Positions 2,871 through 27,087 of a stretch of 64,000 nt of DNA are shown here, piece after piece (position 1 is the first letter of the stretch; each line of letters begins with the position of its first letter). Under the pieces are notes generated by a model. The model did not search any database, was not told the origin of the DNA, and saw only the letters and a list, made by a program, of their open reading frames with translations. The stretch lies in the sequence record NC_048047.1; one strand, 5' to 3'. Made by a program: the position numbers and the translations under genes.

Positions 2871-3476
2871 ATGCTCGGGCAGCAGCATTATGCGCGCTCT
2901 GAGCATGATCACTATCCCACGCCGCCTAAGGCGACCCAGGCGTTCCTCGACCATCCCTATGTCGCTTCCCTGATCGCCGACCGCGTGATCTGGGAGCCGG
3001 CGTGTGGAAACGGGGCCATCGTTAAGGTTATCGCCCCGCAGGTCCGCGCCACCTATGCCACCGATTTGGTGGTCTATCCAGGCGACTTCGAGCCGGATGG
3101 CCTGGGAGACTTCTACGCCATCAAGGACCTTCAACGAGACCTGTCCTTGGTGGTGGGCAGGACCATCGAAGCCCCCGACGGCATCGTCACCAACCCACCG
3201 TACGGCAAGGACGCCGAGCGCTTCGCCCGTCACGCGCTCGAACTGATGCGCCCCGTTGGTGGCTTCGTGGCCATGTTGTGCCGGCACGAATGGGACGCGG
3301 CCAAGGGTCGTAAGGACCTTTTCGACAGTCCCGCCTTCGCCGCCAAGATCACCCTGCGCTTTCGTCCGCGCTGGTTCGAGAACACCACCGGCGCGCCGCG
3401 CCACTCGTATGCTTGGTACGTCTGGTCCTGGGCCAAAGACGCTGCCACGCCCCCGATGACCCTTTACGCAGGCTGA
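2871..3476 (+). CDS. DNA amino-methyltransferase (N6-adenine/N4-cytosine type)
   Basis: Motif I 'WEPACGNG', motif IV 'TNPPY'; AAGGA RBS before ATG 2871. Confidence 0.8.
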   Translation: MLGQQHYARSEHDHYPTPPKATQAFLDHPYVASLIADRVIWEPACGNGAIVKVIAPQVRATYATDLVVYPGDFEPDGLGDFYAIKDLQRDLSLVVGRTIEAPDGIVTNPPYGKDAERFARHALELMRPVGGFVAMLCRHEWDAAKGRKDLFDSPAFAAKITLRFRPRWFENTTGAPRHSYAWYVWSWAKDAATPPMTLYAG

Positions 3477-23803: not shown

Positions 23804-24517
23804 ATGGTTGCAAGCGCTGCTTTGAGGACCGCTCCGGCGGCCTCCTCGCGGACCACTGCCCAAAAGGCTCCGGCCCGCGCCAAGTCGTCCCGCATGACCA
23901 ACGTCTGGATGCGCAACGGCGATGAGTCCACCATTCCCGGCCGCCTGACCTCGCGTCGCGTGCAACTGGGCATGGACCAGATCGACGTCGCCAACAAGAT
24001 GGGCGTGGCCCGTGCGGCCTATTCCCAGTACGAGACCGGCAAGGTCACCCCCACGCTCGACAAGATCATCAAGGCCGCCGAGGCCCTGGAGACGACGCCG
24101 CAGTGGATCGCGTTCGGCGGCATGAACCACGAAATCCCGATCCTGACCTACAACTCGTCCAACCGCACCTGGGTCAGCACCGACCAGACGTGGCCTGTGC
24201 CGGCGTCCTGGATCAAGGACCGCCTGTCCAACGTCGATCCCCACAAGCTCGATGCCTACGAAGCCACGACCAGCAGCCCCAGCGCCATGGTCCAGGCCGG
24301 CGACGTCGTGCTCGTCGATCGCGAGGAAAAGCCGGGCACGCGTCTCTACCAGGAGTTCGTGTTCGCGATGGATGGTGAATGTCTGACCGACAACCTGCGC
24401 AAGACCGATGGCGGCTATCTCGTCGGCCTCGCCGAGGAGGGCAAGCAGCCCGTCCTGGTCAACACGCGGGCCATCCGAATTCTCGGCAAGGTCGTCGCCG
24501 TCTTCGGCGCCCCCTAG
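23804..24517 (+). CDS. XRE-HTH / S24-like transcriptional regulator
   Basis: 'RRVQLGMDQIDVANKMGVARAAYSQYETG' HTH; C-terminal 'AGDVVLVD...RILGKVV' S24 fold. Confidence 0.75.
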   Translation: MVASAALRTAPAASSRTTAQKAPARAKSSRMTNVWMRNGDESTIPGRLTSRRVQLGMDQIDVANKMGVARAAYSQYETGKVTPTLDKIIKAAEALETTPQWIAFGGMNHEIPILTYNSSNRTWVSTDQTWPVPASWIKDRLSNVDPHKLDAYEATTSSPSAMVQAGDVVLVDREEKPGTRLYQEFVFAMDGECLTDNLRKTDGGYLVGLAEEGKQPVLVNTRAIRILGKVVAVFGAP

Positions 24518-24540
24518 TCTCCGTTGCTCATGGTACATGG

Positions 24541-24573
24541 AAAAGGCCCGCCAGATCGCTCTGGCGGGCCTTC
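24541..24573. terminator. Probably bidirectional terminator
   Basis: AAAAGGCCCGCCAGA-tcgc-TCTGGCGGGCCTT. Confidence 0.7.
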
Positions 24574-24986
24574 CTGTAGGTCATCCGTAGACGACTAGAC
24601 CGGTTTAGGCGAAAGCGCCCAGGTCACCCGGAACCTGACTCCGACTCGCACTCGCTCGGCCATCCAGCCTCGCTTCTCCGCACTCCGCGTGATCCCATCT
24701 CCGATGGGCGGCGCCTGCTCTCCCTTTCAGTCGGATCGGAGCAGGACAGGGACGCGTCACAGCGCCCTTGATAGCCACACCTTAGCGCCGACTTTCTCCA
24801 TGTCAAGAAATGCGACATGGAGAAAGTGCGCTTGACGCACAGGTCTAGCTCGGCCATCCTCGACCTGCATCGACAACCCTGTCTCTAGCACGTCAGGACC
24901 GGATTGCGAGCGTGGGGCGCTTCGGCGCGCTGGACTTCGGCGAAGCGCCCCTCGCTGACAAAATTCACGTCCCGCCGACACAATGC

Positions 24987-25015
24987 TTGACATGGAAAAC
25001 GAGGTAGGTTACAGG
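24987..25015 (+). promoter_or_regulatory. Sigma70-type promoter for the tmRNA/tRNA island
   Basis: TTGACA at 24987 about 30 nt upstream of the tmRNA acceptor piece. Confidence 0.55.
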
Positions 25016-25019
25016 TCAG

Positions 25020-25400
25020 GAGTTGTCGGCTGAAGGGTCCTTCGGGACCTGGATGACGGAATATACGGAGACTGAACTGGACCGGGGTGCGATTCCCCGC
25101 GCCTCCACCACCAAGTCTCCCGGCCGGTCCCCACCCAGGGACCTGGGCGTCGCCTTCAGCGACGGCGCCCGATCTGAACGGCGCGGGAGACTTTGTTCTG
25201 GGGGCGATCAGCATCGACAGGCAGGGTAAGTAGAAGACGCGACACGGCATGGCTGCCGGTTCCTTCGGGAGCGCTCGGCCCACTTTGACAAATGTCAACG
25301 CTGCAAACGACAACGACGTCGTGGTTTCGACCATGACCTCGGTCAAGCTGGCCGCTTAACGGCTCGGGGTTCAGGAGGCGCCTTTTCACCCAAGGTCTCC
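25020..25400 (+). ncRNA. ssrA: Circularly permuted two-piece tmRNA: acceptor piece ~25020-25110, intervening segment 25111-25199, coding piece from 25200; tag ANDNDVVVSTMTSVKLAA at 25303-25359
   Basis: 3' T-arm and CGCCTCC-A-CCA lie upstream of 5' GGGGGCG; 7-bp acceptor stem with G3.U70; tag starts ANDN and ends LAA-TAA; outer ends approximate. Confidence 0.92.
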
Positions 25401-25455
25401 AGCTTGCCCTAAGGGGCTTAGAGGACAGGCGGCGTAAGCCGCGCGATCAACACCA

Positions 25456-25607
25456 GGGGGCGGCCTGGGTCCCGAAACCGCCCACCCTCCTGCTTTCGCA
25501 GGTGGGATCAGAAGGTCGGCCTCAAAATAGGCGATCTGTCGGAAGAAACCCCGTTTCGCCGGCTTTCTGATCCCATCTACGAAAGCTGGAGGTTCGGTGC
25601 CGCCCTC
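25456..25607 (+). ncRNA. Unassigned structured RNA (long irregular hairpin)
   Basis: Nested pairings GGGGGCGGC/GCCGCCCTC, CCTCC/GGAGG, GCTTTCG/CGAAAGC, AGGTGGGATCAGAAG/CTTTCTGATCCCATCT; no ORF. Confidence 0.55.
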
Positions 25608-25632
25608 GGGAGGCGTCGAGCTTTCACAAAGT

Positions 25633-25709
25633 TGCGGGGTGGAGCAGTCCGGTAGCTCGTCTGGCTCATAACCAGAAGGTCAAGGGTTCAAATCCCTTCC
25701 CCGCTTCCA
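25633..25709 (+). tRNA. tRNA-Met(CAT), initiator-like
   Basis: Cloverleaf, encoded CCA, 1:72 mismatch (U:U), A11:U24. Confidence 0.9.
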
Positions 25710-25711
25710 TT

Positions 25712-26052
25712 TGCTGGGCTATACCAGCGAATAGACAAGGCCGCTGAACCGGCGTCTTCAGGCGTCGATGAAAGGTCTAACCTCGCGTCGCTCCCCGGTC
25801 AGTAGGGGAGTGGCAGTCAGAGCAGATAAGGCGGGCGCGCTGCGGCCGAGATAATGGCTTTGACTAGTCGGCCGGCGGGCTAGAGGGATGAGAGGCCAGA
25901 TGTCTCCTGCCGGAGGGACGCTGGCCGCCACCGATCTGTTTTCCAGGCCTCATGCTCGGCCCCGATCAACGGGGTCAGGGATTGAGGCTAGGTCCCGGCG
26001 AGACGCCTGTAGCAGGCTCACAAGCTAGGGCATGCGGCCTGGAAACCAGATC
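25712..26052 (+). ncRNA. Unassigned structured RNA(s) between tRNAs
   Basis: No ORF; many stems, a possible H-type pseudoknot (25815-25874) and a multibranch domain closed by GATCTG..TTCCAGGCC/GGCCTGGAA..CAGATC. Confidence 0.5.
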
Positions 26053-26054
26053 GG

Positions 26055-26131
26055 GGTGGTATAGCTCAGCCCGGTAGAGCGGGAGGCTCATTCCCTCCTT
26101 GTCCTAGGTTCAAATCCTAGTGCCACCTCCA
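26055..26131 (+). tRNA. tRNA with CAT anticodon (elongator Met or Ile2), atypical loop
   Basis: Cloverleaf GGTGGTA/TGCCACC, GCTC/GAGC, GGAGG-CTCATTC-CCTCC, CTAGG-TTCAAAT-CCTAG, encoded CCA. Confidence 0.85.
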
Positions 26132-26233
26132 ACCATAGCAGCGCCGTTCCGGTCACTGGGCATTGCGTCCCACACCCACGGCTCAAGGCCCGGCGCCAGG
26201 GCCTTGACGGGGTTGTCCAGACCCGGCACAAGG

Positions 26234-26282
26234 GCAAAAGGAACCCAGCCCCAGGTACGCCTCGGGCTGGGTTTTCCTTTTT
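26234..26282. terminator. Strong hairpin, possible terminator or processing stem
   Basis: AAAAGGAA-CCCAGCCC...GGGCTGGG-TTTTCCTTTT. Confidence 0.55.
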
Positions 26283-26285
26283 ATG

Positions 26286-26362
26286 GATGCCGTGGACTGA
26301 ATGGTTTAGGCGCGAGACTGCAAATCTCGATCATGCGGGTTCGAGTCCCGTCGGCATCTCCA
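26286..26362 (+). tRNA. tRNA-Cys(GCA)
   Basis: Cloverleaf GATGCCG/CGGCATC, CGAGA-CTGCAAA-TCTCG, U73 discriminator, encoded CCA. Confidence 0.92.
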
Positions 26363-26378
26363 CCTCTTCAGGACGACT

Positions 26379-26636
26379 ATGCCGCCCATCCCCAAGCCAT
26401 CTCCTGAGTTCCTGGCCTCGCCCGAGGGGCAGGCCTTGGAAGCGCGTTTCGCTGCGATCAGGGAGAAGCATCGACCGGCCATGGACGCGGTGATCGCGAA
26501 AGCCGCAGCCTACCGGCGCGAAGCGCTCGCCACCCTCAACTCGATCACCGACAAGGCCTTACGCGAGAGCGTGGAGTCCGCGACAGGTTTCACCTTGCCG
26601 GTCAGGATCGTCCTACCGATCCCAGGGTTCAAATGA
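26379..26636 (+). CDS. Hypothetical protein
   Basis: AGGA RBS; followed by a terminator. Confidence 0.55.
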   Translation: MPPIPKPSPEFLASPEGQALEARFAAIREKHRPAMDAVIAKAAAYRREALATLNSITDKALRESVESATGFTLPVRIVLPIPGFK

Positions 26637-26667
26637 AAGCCGCCGACCTCAGGTCGGCGGCTTTTCG
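26636..26667. terminator. Bidirectional terminator between convergent ORFs
   Basis: AAAGCCGCCGACC-tca-GGTCGGCGGCTTTT. Confidence 0.75.
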
Positions 26668-26894
26668 TCTTTCAGGCCTAGGAACTCATCCAGGCTGCCG
26701 GGCGGCCAAGGCTGCATGATCGGGTCAGCCCCGCCGGCATAGAACTTCCCCTGAAGGCTGGGCGAGAACGCCCCCTCGATCCCCGTCGCCAAGGCCATGA
26801 GGTCGAAAGCGTCTCCAGGGCTGAATTTGATCGTCCCCGCCATGGGCTCATCGCTGATGCGACCGCCAGATGGGCGCATATCCTTGATGTTCAT
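26649..26894 (-). CDS. Hypothetical protein
   Basis: GGAG RBS before MNIKDM. Confidence 0.55.
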   Translation of the reverse strand: MNIKDMRPSGGRISDEPMAGTIKFSPGDAFDLMALATGIEGAFSPSLQGKFYAGGADPIMQPWPPGSLDEFLGLKDEKPPT

Positions 26895-27087
26895 GATGTT
26901 CTCCGTCCGCGACCGCCTTACCCGATCTGGGCTCGCCGCGCCACCAGAAATCCGCATTTCACAGAGGGTTCAAGCAGCCGAAGGCTTCCAAAGGGCATTT
27001 CCGCAATAGAAACAGGTACTTGAAGTATTTTTCAGGCTGTGCTATAGTCTCTTCAAGGTCAAAGGGTGGCTTTGACCGTAAGCATGA

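Follow-up and report, generated by a model that had tools for sequence, protein, structure and literature searches.

A permuted two-piece tmRNA gene in Caulobacter phage CcrBL9 and its relatives, with a probable valine resume codon and a long tag

The stretch of DNA analysed here (the window, 64,000 nucleotides) belongs to the genome of Caulobacter phage CcrBL9 (NC_048047 / MH588546; 322,272 bp; genus Bertelyvirus, subfamily Dolichocephalovirinae) and carries a gene for a circularly permuted transfer-messenger RNA (tmRNA). A window position is the record position minus 124000, and window positions 24000-27000 show 100% identity to record positions 148000-151000. An earlier note on this DNA had proposed that the phage encodes a permuted two-piece tmRNA of host type, and had named ARAGORN and the Rfam alphaproteobacterial covariance model as suitable checks. 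ARAGORN calls a permuted tmRNA (tmRNA*) on the + strand at 25018..25450, which corresponds to NC_048047 149018-149450. The Rfam model RF04321 (tmRNA_permuted) matches positions 25054-25359 over the full model (1-213) with a score of 73.3 bits, where the gathering score is 47 (E = 3.6e-12), and together these two independent calls bear out the proposal well beyond what chance would give. The alphaproteobacterial model itself, RF01849 (alpha_tmRNA), scores 45.2 bits, below its gathering score of 50, and aligns only with the tRNA-like core (model positions 82-177).

The permuted order can be read directly from the sequence, as the T-arm, the 3' strand of the acceptor stem and the CCA end all lie upstream of the acceptor 5' strand, with 89 nt between them (Table 1). 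All seven pairs of the acceptor stem form (25100-25106 with 25200-25206), among them G25202:U25104, which is equivalent to G3:U70. With its 7-bp acceptor stem, this G3:U70 pair, a discriminator A, and a T-arm with a 7-nt loop, the element has a tRNA-Ala-like domain. The fully paired stem described in the earlier note is thus confirmed, and its coordinates for the acceptor strands, the T-arm, the CCA, the helix of the intervening segment, and a frame at 25303-25359 all match the sequence. A consensus fold of seven phage sequences contains 64 pairs, 22 of which are changed on both sides and still paired. Within the T-arm, two of the five pairs change on both sides in this fold and the other three are invariant, while the acceptor U:G pair (G3:U70) is found in all seven sequences. 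Compared to the related Bertelyvirus RB23, the T-arm of CcrBL9 shows no differences, and its T-loop is also that of the Caulobacter hosts. Positions 25200..25217 are likewise identical to RB23, and differ from the host sequence (GGGGCCGATCAGCATCGAC) by a single base, in the acceptor strand. We also see a second CCA directly after the encoded one (CCUCC-A-CCA-CCA-AG, 25100-25113); this doubling occurs in Bertelyvirus and in phage Rogue, and not in phage CcrPW or the host.

Table 1 Features of the tmRNA locus of CcrBL9, in window positions.
Feature	Position	Strand	Description and basis
Promoter-like element	24988..25016	+	-35 TTGACA 24988-24993, 17-nt spacer, -10-like TACAGG 25011-25016; putative function
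5' leader hairpin of acceptor piece	25034..25050	+	AGGGUCC-UUCG-GGACCU; read from sequence
Helix P2, 5'-side strand	25054..25079	+	Predicted to join acceptor and coding pieces; Rfam RF04321 alignment
T-arm	25083..25099	+	CGGGG, loop UGCGAUU, CCCCG; sequence and Rfam alignment
3' end of acceptor piece	25100..25110	+	Acceptor 3' strand CGCCUCC 25100-25106, discriminator A 25107, encoded CCA 25108-25110
Intervening segment, 89 nt	25111..25199	+	Closing helix 25113-25124 with 25182-25194 around two hairpins
5' end of coding piece	25200..25217	+	Acceptor 5' strand GGGGGCG (25200-25206), then D-loop-like AUCAGCAUCGA
Helix P2, 3'-side strand	25218..25244	+	Rfam RF04321 alignment
PK1	25245..25280	+	Stem 1 CGGC 25245-48 with GCCG 25255-58; stem 2 GGCU 25251-54 with GGCC 25277-80; by eye
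Frame-setting AAAU and probable resume codon	25290..25296	+	AAAU 25290-25293; GUC (Val) 25294-25296
Tag reading frame	25294..25359	+	Probably VNAANDNDVVVSTMTSVKLAA, then UAA; sequence and ARAGORN
Helix 5	25350..25364	+	GGCCG, CUUAA, CGGCU; stop UAA 25357-25359 in loop; from computed fold
3' domain of coding piece	25365..25450	+	Divergent pseudoknot-like region, then GCCC-UAAG-GGGC and GCGGC-GUAA-GCCGC hairpins
Long hairpin between tmRNA and tRNA-fMet	25489..25589	+	CUUUCGCAGGYGGG ... UCUGUCGG ... CCCRUCUWCGAAAG
tRNA-Met(CAU)	25633-25709	+	Labelled tRNA-fMet in record
tRNA-Met(CAU)	26055-26131	+	
tRNA-Cys(GCA)	26286-26362	+	

The acceptor piece begins with a leader hairpin that is matched by a UUCG hairpin, GUCCGGCUUCGGCCGAAC, in the same position of the host gene, and RF01849 also models one there. 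Helix P2 is predicted to join the two pieces. By eye, its inner part comprises six good pairs (CUG 25077-79 with CAG 25218-20, and CUG 25072-74 with CAG 25222-24), and where CcrBL9 has CUG/CAG, CcrPW has CAA/UUG, a change on both sides. The outer part is imperfect, with mismatches or non-standard pairs in the Rfam alignment. The consensus fold recovered neither P2 nor stem 1 of the pseudoknot PK1 due to alignment shifts, so both were instead read by eye.

The intervening segment is highly structured. The helix that closes it, already described in the earlier note, is formed by AAGTCTCCC (25113-25121) pairing with GGGAGACTT (25186-25194), and at least seven pairs of the closing helix are changed on both sides yet paired in the seven phage sequences. 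The segment folds at -50 kcal/mol (z = -4.87), and 0 of 200 shuffled sequences fold as well. Between CcrBL9 and RB23, 33.7% of its positions differ and the fold is kept. Host intervening segments are 23-48 nt long, most often 30, in 114 Caulobacterales loci. We presume that the segment is excised during maturation. Two motifs, CAGCGA and AUCUGAACGG, are found inside it (window 25111-25199; L007 4473-4553; L139 5869-5946), and are common only to Bertelyvirus, Colossusvirus and the uncultured viral contig L139, the remainder of the segment being ~34% different. Nothing comparable to them is seen in host intervening segments, and they may represent a processing or protein-binding signal. A scan of metagenomes with the intervening-segment pattern gave one match only, L142, which was dismissed as a chance occurrence, as it lies inside a coding region with no tmRNA there.

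Pseudoknot PK1 lies between P2 and the resume codon, and its pairing is kept in CcrBL9, CcrPW, phiCbK and the host despite differing sequence. Stems 1 and 2 are UAGG-CCUA and GAUCU-GGGUC in CcrPW, GUGG-CCAC and GACCU-GGGUC in phiCbK, and CGG-CCG and GGCCC-GGGCC in the host. This pairing was judged by eye and without a formal covariation statistic, because the MAFFT alignment puts stem 1 one column off; stem 2 does appear in the consensus fold, with two pairs changed on both sides. Loop 3 of PK1 holds an extra hairpin at 25259-25272, whereas the host loop 3 is UUUC, without a hairpin. Helix 5, which carries the stop codon in its loop, is also kept while its sequence differs, being GGCC-UAAG-GGCC in CcrPW and GCUGC-GUAAU-GCAGC in the host.

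The 3' domain of the coding piece is divergent. Its limit at 25450 is the end of the ARAGORN gene call and not a mapped mature end. The region 25340-25600 gives a fold with z = -4.45, and GGAGG/UCUCC in the 3' domain of CcrBL9 is replaced by GAAGG/CCUUC in phage CcrSC, again a change on both sides. On reading the sequence, the alphaproteobacterial 3' motif GGCAACAGAA was not found in the CcrBL9 gene, and its loss accounts for the sub-threshold RF01849 score. The motif is kept in CcrPW (66.8 bits with RF01849), Colossus, Bajun and phiCbK. On the combined basis of this missing motif and the RF01849 score, the CcrBL9 RNA is best classed from its sequence as a divergent derivative of the alphaproteobacterial tmRNA type, and not as a typical member.

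Homologues of the gene occupy the same position, beside tRNA-Cys and tRNA-fMet genes, in the Bertelyvirus phages CcrSC, RB23, BL47, C1, C2 and J4, in Colossusvirus (CcrPW, Colossus), Poindextervirus (Rogue, BL10, RBC8) and Shapirovirus (phiCbK, Karma, Magneto, Swift, BL57), and in the Brevundimonas phages Bajun, Kabachok and Kikimora. A homologue was present in every one of the 16 relatives examined among Caulobacter and Brevundimonas phages. CcrBL9 and RB23 differ by 13.4% over the gene and by 0% in the tRNA-like domain, a pattern that we read as that of a functional RNA with a spacer held by structure only. This conservation bears on whether the locus could be a non-functional relic, either a piece of host ssrA left from an integration site, a decaying passenger, or simply a protein-coding region. 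Temperate phages do often carry integration-site ssrA fragments (PMC9004378), and three open reading frames of 68-153 amino acids overlap the region, where the records of phages BL47 and BL64 annotate hypothetical proteins. However, this is a complete gene that has both halves, a tag and a promoter-like box. At least five phage groups conserve it, and it combines structure-preserving paired changes with an unchanged tRNA-like domain, so that we regard a relic as scarcely credible. Two specific forms of this idea were rejected. The three overlapping frames have no Pfam match, and the CcrBL9 RefSeq record has no coding sequence there, which disposes of the protein-coding version. An integration-site fragment or a recent capture from the host is not compatible with a complete gene whose sequence is far from that of the host, a distance which indicates that capture was not recent.

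The frame at 25303-25359 reads ANDNDVVVSTMTSVKLAA, followed by the stop. The earlier note had taken this as the resume frame, beginning at GCA 25303. The frame is correct, but the first codon is probably not, as the sequence comparison favours GUC 25294, three codons upstream, which would make the encoded tag VNAANDNDVVVSTMTSVKLAA. Four observations lead to this preference. First, GUC takes the very place that the resume codon GCN holds in the hosts, behind AAAU or AACU. Second, in the frame-setting rule derived for E. coli tmRNA, an A four bases upstream of the resume codon is nearly invariant (A86; PMC2481249); A25290 stands four bases before GUC 25294, while the base four before GCA 25303 is C. 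Third, the codon just before the Asn-Asp-Asn (NDN) codons is variable among phages, encoding Ala, Asp, Ser or His, with Ser encoded at 25303 in RB23 and BL47. Fourth, the inserts between the GUC and NDN codons are 0, 6 or 9 nt, all multiples of three, such that the frame from GUC is always kept. ARAGORN also starts the tag at GUC 25294, and GUC is present in 16/16 phage genes examined, with GUG in the uncultured contig L139. At its other end the tag reads ...SVKLAA before UAA 25357-25359, giving the hydrophobic residue and Ala-Ala of a C-terminal degron. An [L/I/V]AA end is found in the tags of the 16 related genes from Caulobacter and Brevundimonas phages, and 5/6 additional uncultured viral contigs share it, the sixth (L148) ending in LVA. 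The last 54 nt of the tag frame (25306-25359) show 0 differences between CcrBL9 and RB23.

An intact frame of this kind is difficult to reconcile with a decoy, in which the phage RNA would occupy host SmpB or compete with host tmRNA, as proposed for the mycobacteriophage DS6A. There is precedent for such an effect, as tmRNA in E. coli is inhibited by an RNA made up of the tRNA-like domain only (PMC4131195; PMC11915505), and the authors of the Lacusarx study suggested that its phage tmRNA counteracts host tagging (PMC5648845). A decoy would nevertheless need no conserved frame with a stop, no frame-setting context, no PK1 and no helix 5, all of which CcrBL9 keeps. We therefore consider a decoy improbable. 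The conserved reading frame and the structure-preserving paired changes together contradict both this explanation and that of a relic.

To compare the tags, we read each phage gene from the conserved GUC (GUG in L139). The encoded tag is VNAANDNDVVVSTMTSVKLAA in both CcrBL9 and CcrSC, VNASNDNDVVVSTMTSVKLAA in RB23 and BL47, VAANDNDVVAFASAREAIAA in phiCbK and BL57, VADNDNDVVAFASAREAIAA in Karma and Magneto, VASNDNDVVAYASAREAIAA in CcrBL10, VAANDNAPFAVREAIAA in Rogue, RBC8 and Bajun, VNDNDAPVMEQRLAA in CcrPW, VNDNDAPVMEQLLAA in Colossus, VEAHNDNFAAGERVLLAA in Kabachok, and VNDNHYQSHALAA in L139. The host tag in C. vibrioides and other Caulobacter genomes is ANDNFAEEFAVAA, or AANDNFAEEFAVAA when the tmRNA-borne alanine is included (PMC9393093). 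As the earlier note had stated, the phage tag differs from that of the host yet keeps both its ends. The features kept are an NDN close to the start and the terminal Ala-Ala. All phage tags conserve this early NDN and finish with a hydrophobic residue followed by Ala-Ala, and the middle varies between genera. Tag length is 13-21 residues in phages and nearly always 13 in the 114 Caulobacterales loci. The CcrBL9 tag is the longest of the set, and its middle and end, VSTMTSVKLAA, are specific to Bertelyvirus; a scan of IMG/VR for the Bertelyvirus tag returned only CcrBL9 and CcrSC. The long, rewritten tag remarked on in the earlier note is no peculiarity of CcrBL9. Related phages also encode long tags with replaced middles, phiCbK having a tag of 20 residues that shares NDNDVV with CcrBL9, and judged from these sequences the feature is a property of the whole lineage.

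A group of unrelated-looking IMG/VR contigs, several of them AT-rich (L145, L146, L148, L149 and L151), also carry alphaproteobacterial-type permuted tmRNAs in which AAAU-GUC is followed by (AA)NDN. The tags read from this group are VAANDNTVEFALAA, VAANDNNEVSYALAA, VNDNYNMELALVA and VNDNYNIVGKVLAA. On this evidence, the Val-started form may be a signature of phage-borne tmRNAs well beyond the phages of Caulobacter.

The altered tag might itself be the point of a functional phage tmRNA, with the Val start and the 5-8 extra residues between NDN and LAA changing how tagged proteins are handled. Possible consequences would be better simultaneous binding of SspB and ClpX, a lost dependence on SspB, or routing to Lon or FtsH. 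The difference in tag length from the host fits such a role, as do a middle that varies between genera while both ends are fixed, and a core with 0 changes in 54 nt within Bertelyvirus. Hersch et al. are said to have found, in 2004, that wider spacing improves delivery. In E. coli, an engineered tag with a 4-residue spacer (DAS+4) is delivered well by SspB (PMC9382460). On the other hand, a variable middle is equally compatible with relaxed constraint, the nucleotides of the tag could be conserved on account of RNA structure rather than the peptide, and the LAA at the C-terminus speaks for retention of the ordinary ClpXP route. On balance, we see a changed fate of tagged proteins as a minority possibility, though the strongest of the alternatives considered here.

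The novelty implied in the earlier note is not supported. The CcrBL9 tmRNA gene is already known, as it is listed in the survey of Buchholz et al. 2022, which counted 53 two-piece tmRNAs in phage genomes and in Table S1 gives CcrBL9, CcrSC, CcrPW, phiCbK, Swift, Karma and Magneto as 'Permuted' (PMC9004378); homologues also occur throughout the subfamily, as described above. Reports of phage tmRNAs in general go back to 2014 or earlier, with mycobacteriophages and Bacillus phage G among the carriers (PMC4131195), and RefSeq viruses were also processed in the 2025 update of the tmRNA database. Gill et al. 2012, on phiCbK genomics, make no mention of a tmRNA, and we found no published analysis of the phage tag in the literature. 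What is added here is the probable Val resume codon of the whole lineage, the tags with fixed ends and a variable middle, the large structured intervening segment with its motifs, the hairpin in the PK1 loop, and another, conserved one downstream of the gene.

The sequence records themselves say little of these genes. The CcrBL9 gene has no feature in either the RefSeq or the GenBank record, and the same is true of the tmRNA in ~40 GenBank/RefSeq Caulobacter phage records (for example NC_019405, ~103250-103690). A tmRNA is annotated only in Brevundimonas phage Bajun, and in BL47 and BL64 the hypothetical proteins mentioned above (gp217c in BL47) are annotated over it. In addition, ARAGORN misses the permuted tmRNA of Rogue, Colossus, Kabachok, Kikimora and contig L139, all five of which are detected with RF04321 (loci L005 2969-3287, L006 4408-4701, L137 772-1027, L138 772-1117 and L139 5829-6046). 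Published ARAGORN-based counts of two-piece phage tmRNAs are consequently too low.

Both flanks of the gene carry conserved elements. Upstream, a (C)TTGACA/G box is aligned at the same distance in CcrSC, RB23, CcrPW, Colossus, phiCbK, Rogue and contig L139. A generic promoter scan missed the TTGACA box because its -10 is weak, and called only CTGACA..CACAAT with an 18-nt spacer at 24955-24984, directly before it. The generic scan gave no terminator. A further promoter-like box, GCTTGACG, was noted upstream of the tmRNA at 24829 (24829-24836). Downstream, the long hairpin between the tmRNA and tRNA-fMet genes has an invariant apical motif, UCUGUCGG. In a consensus fold of seven phages from Bertely-, Poindexter- and Shapirovirus, 9/26 of its pairs are changed on both sides and still paired. 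The hairpin motif occurs once in the window, where 0 occurrences are expected, and the hairpin is also present at L002 ~1972-2075, L003 ~1974-2075, L005 ~3367-3465, L130 ~770-868, L131 ~827-925 and L134 ~874-975. It is absent from the host ssrA loci compared, with the exception of L057, whose match is probably due to chance, and no Rfam family was found for it, only spurious miRNA models. It could be a processing site, a structure that stabilises the tmRNA 3' end, or a separate small RNA.

No phage partner for the RNA was found. The E. coli SmpB sequence used as query has 100% identity to annotated SmpB, and by tblastn it matched 68 of 50,697 phage records, 0 of which were from Caulobacter phages. 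The absence of smpB remarked on in the earlier note thus extends to the Caulobacter phage records as a whole, from which it follows that the phage RNA must use the SmpB, AlaRS, EF-Tu and processing enzymes of its host.

This dependence also bears on a counter-defence or back-up role, in which the phage RNA would rescue ribosomes after attack by mRNA- or tRNA-cleaving host defences, or replace a host tmRNA lost to cell-cycle degradation. In Caulobacter, the host tmRNA is degraded by RNase R at a set point in the cell cycle. The phage gene sits in a cluster of phage tRNA genes, and evasion of tRNA-targeting defences has been put forward as a role of phage tRNAs (PMC10264068). Structures specific to the lineage (the intervening segment, the PK1 loop hairpin and the downstream hairpin) could moreover alter the stability of the phage RNA. 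However, the RNA would still need host SmpB, which is itself regulated in the host, and no defence system has been linked to the phage tmRNA. We judge this role to be unlikely.

The interpretation that we favour, and hold with good confidence on the strength of these comparisons, is that the gene specifies a functional phage-borne two-piece tmRNA of alphaproteobacterial type, of Caulobacterales-like origin and vertically inherited, which would most likely provide extra ribosome-rescue capacity. Under this interpretation, an ancestor of the phiCbK-like phages (Dolichocephalovirinae) would have acquired the gene from a Caulobacterales-like host, and it would have been inherited vertically since then beside the Cys and Met tRNA genes. 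Host RNA polymerase would transcribe the tmRNA from its own TTGACA-type promoter near 24988. In the predicted precursor, the acceptor stem and the helix that closes the 89-nt intervening segment form one long continuous stem. RNase P would cleave 5' of G25200, and trimming of the 3' end would halt once the encoded CCA (25110) is reached, with loss of the intervening segment, leaving an acceptor piece (about 25020-25110) and a coding piece (25200 onward) held together by the acceptor stem and P2. Host AlaRS would charge the RNA via G3:U70, and host SmpB and EF-Tu would bring the charged RNA to ribosomes stalled at mRNA ends. Translation would then resume at GUC 25294, adding Ala-VNAANDNDVVVSTMTSVKLAA, a 22-residue tag whose C-terminal LAA would direct the product to ClpXP and whose NDN motif could be bound by the SspB adaptor. 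The phage would most likely gain added capacity for ribosome rescue and recycling, since a 322-kb phage with >26 tRNA genes may place a heavy load on translation, and mRNA decay may generate non-stop messages.

Several points weigh against this interpretation. The RF01849 score is sub-threshold and its alignment confined to the tRNA-like core, the usual alphaproteobacterial 3' motif GGCAACAGAA is absent from CcrBL9, and the outer part of P2 pairs imperfectly. Val would be unusual as a resume codon, and the benefit to the phage is purely inferred.

Comparison with known systems places the gene closest to the chromosomal ssrA of its hosts and to its counterparts in related phages. The chromosomal two-piece tmRNA (ssrA), known in Caulobacter crescentus/vibrioides and other Caulobacterales, was reportedly described by Keiler, Shapiro and Williams in 2000. 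Like CcrBL9, Caulobacterales ssrA has the permuted order, the T-loop UGCGAUU, a D-loop-like AUCAGCAUCGAC, G3:U70 and an encoded CCA, as well as the 5' UUCG hairpin, PK1, helix 5 with the stop in its loop, AAAU preceding the resume codon, and a tag with x-NDN at its beginning and Ala-Ala at its end. The CcrBL9 gene differs from it in having GUC (Val) in place of GCG (Ala) as resume codon, 21 encoded tag residues with DVVVSTMTSVKL in the middle where the host has 13 with FAEEFAV, an intervening segment of 89 nt with two internal hairpins in place of about 30 nt, the extra PK1 loop 3 hairpin, and a divergent 3' domain without GGCAACAGAA. The phiCbK-like phages compared (phiCbK, Karma, Magneto, Swift, Rogue, CcrBL10, Colossus, CcrPW, Bajun, Kabachok and Kikimora) share with CcrBL9 the tRNA-Cys/tRNA-fMet neighbours, the upstream TTGACA box, a long structured intervening segment, the PK1 loop 3 hairpin, GUC at the resume position and the conserved tag ends; unlike CcrBL9, phiCbK and CcrPW keep the 3' motif.

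More distant systems resemble CcrBL9 in some respects only. The OM43 phage Melnitz and the pelagimyophages (PMC9004378) also encode a permuted tmRNA of alphaproteobacterial type near an early promoter, and these marine phages differ from CcrBL9 in their hosts and GC content. The Melnitz gene has a glutamine riboswitch, whereas the riboswitch entry for CcrBL9 is 'none' in the table of PMC9004378, and none was detected by Rfam. Mycobacteriophages of the Bxz1 group and Wildcat are, like CcrBL9, large phages with many tRNA genes and no phage SmpB gene, but their tmRNAs are one-piece and unpermuted. The DS6A RNA, which comprises the tRNA-like domain only, lacks a tag frame and has been proposed to act as an inhibitor, and is in this respect unlike CcrBL9.

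The result is in essence the correct re-identification of a gene that was already catalogued, and it has a direct value for annotation, as the ~40 Caulobacter phage records that carry no tmRNA feature include the CcrBL9 RefSeq record, and some of them bear spurious proteins. A bolder proposal, to which we give rather little weight, is that the phiCbK-like phages keep a distinct and old two-piece tmRNA lineage, re-tuned to suit infection. The Val start and the longer spacer between NDN (for SspB) and LAA (for ClpX) would then yield differently handled products, and the phage-specific structures would free production or stability of the RNA from the cell-cycle control of the host. We know of no phage tmRNA with a demonstrated role in infection. 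The two-piece tmRNA of Caulobacter, SmpB, SspB and ClpXP, and the cell-cycle control of these components, are well characterised, and the laboratory strains CB15 and NA1000 support growth of the phages. Caulobacter thus offers a tractable system in which to ask what phage tmRNAs do.

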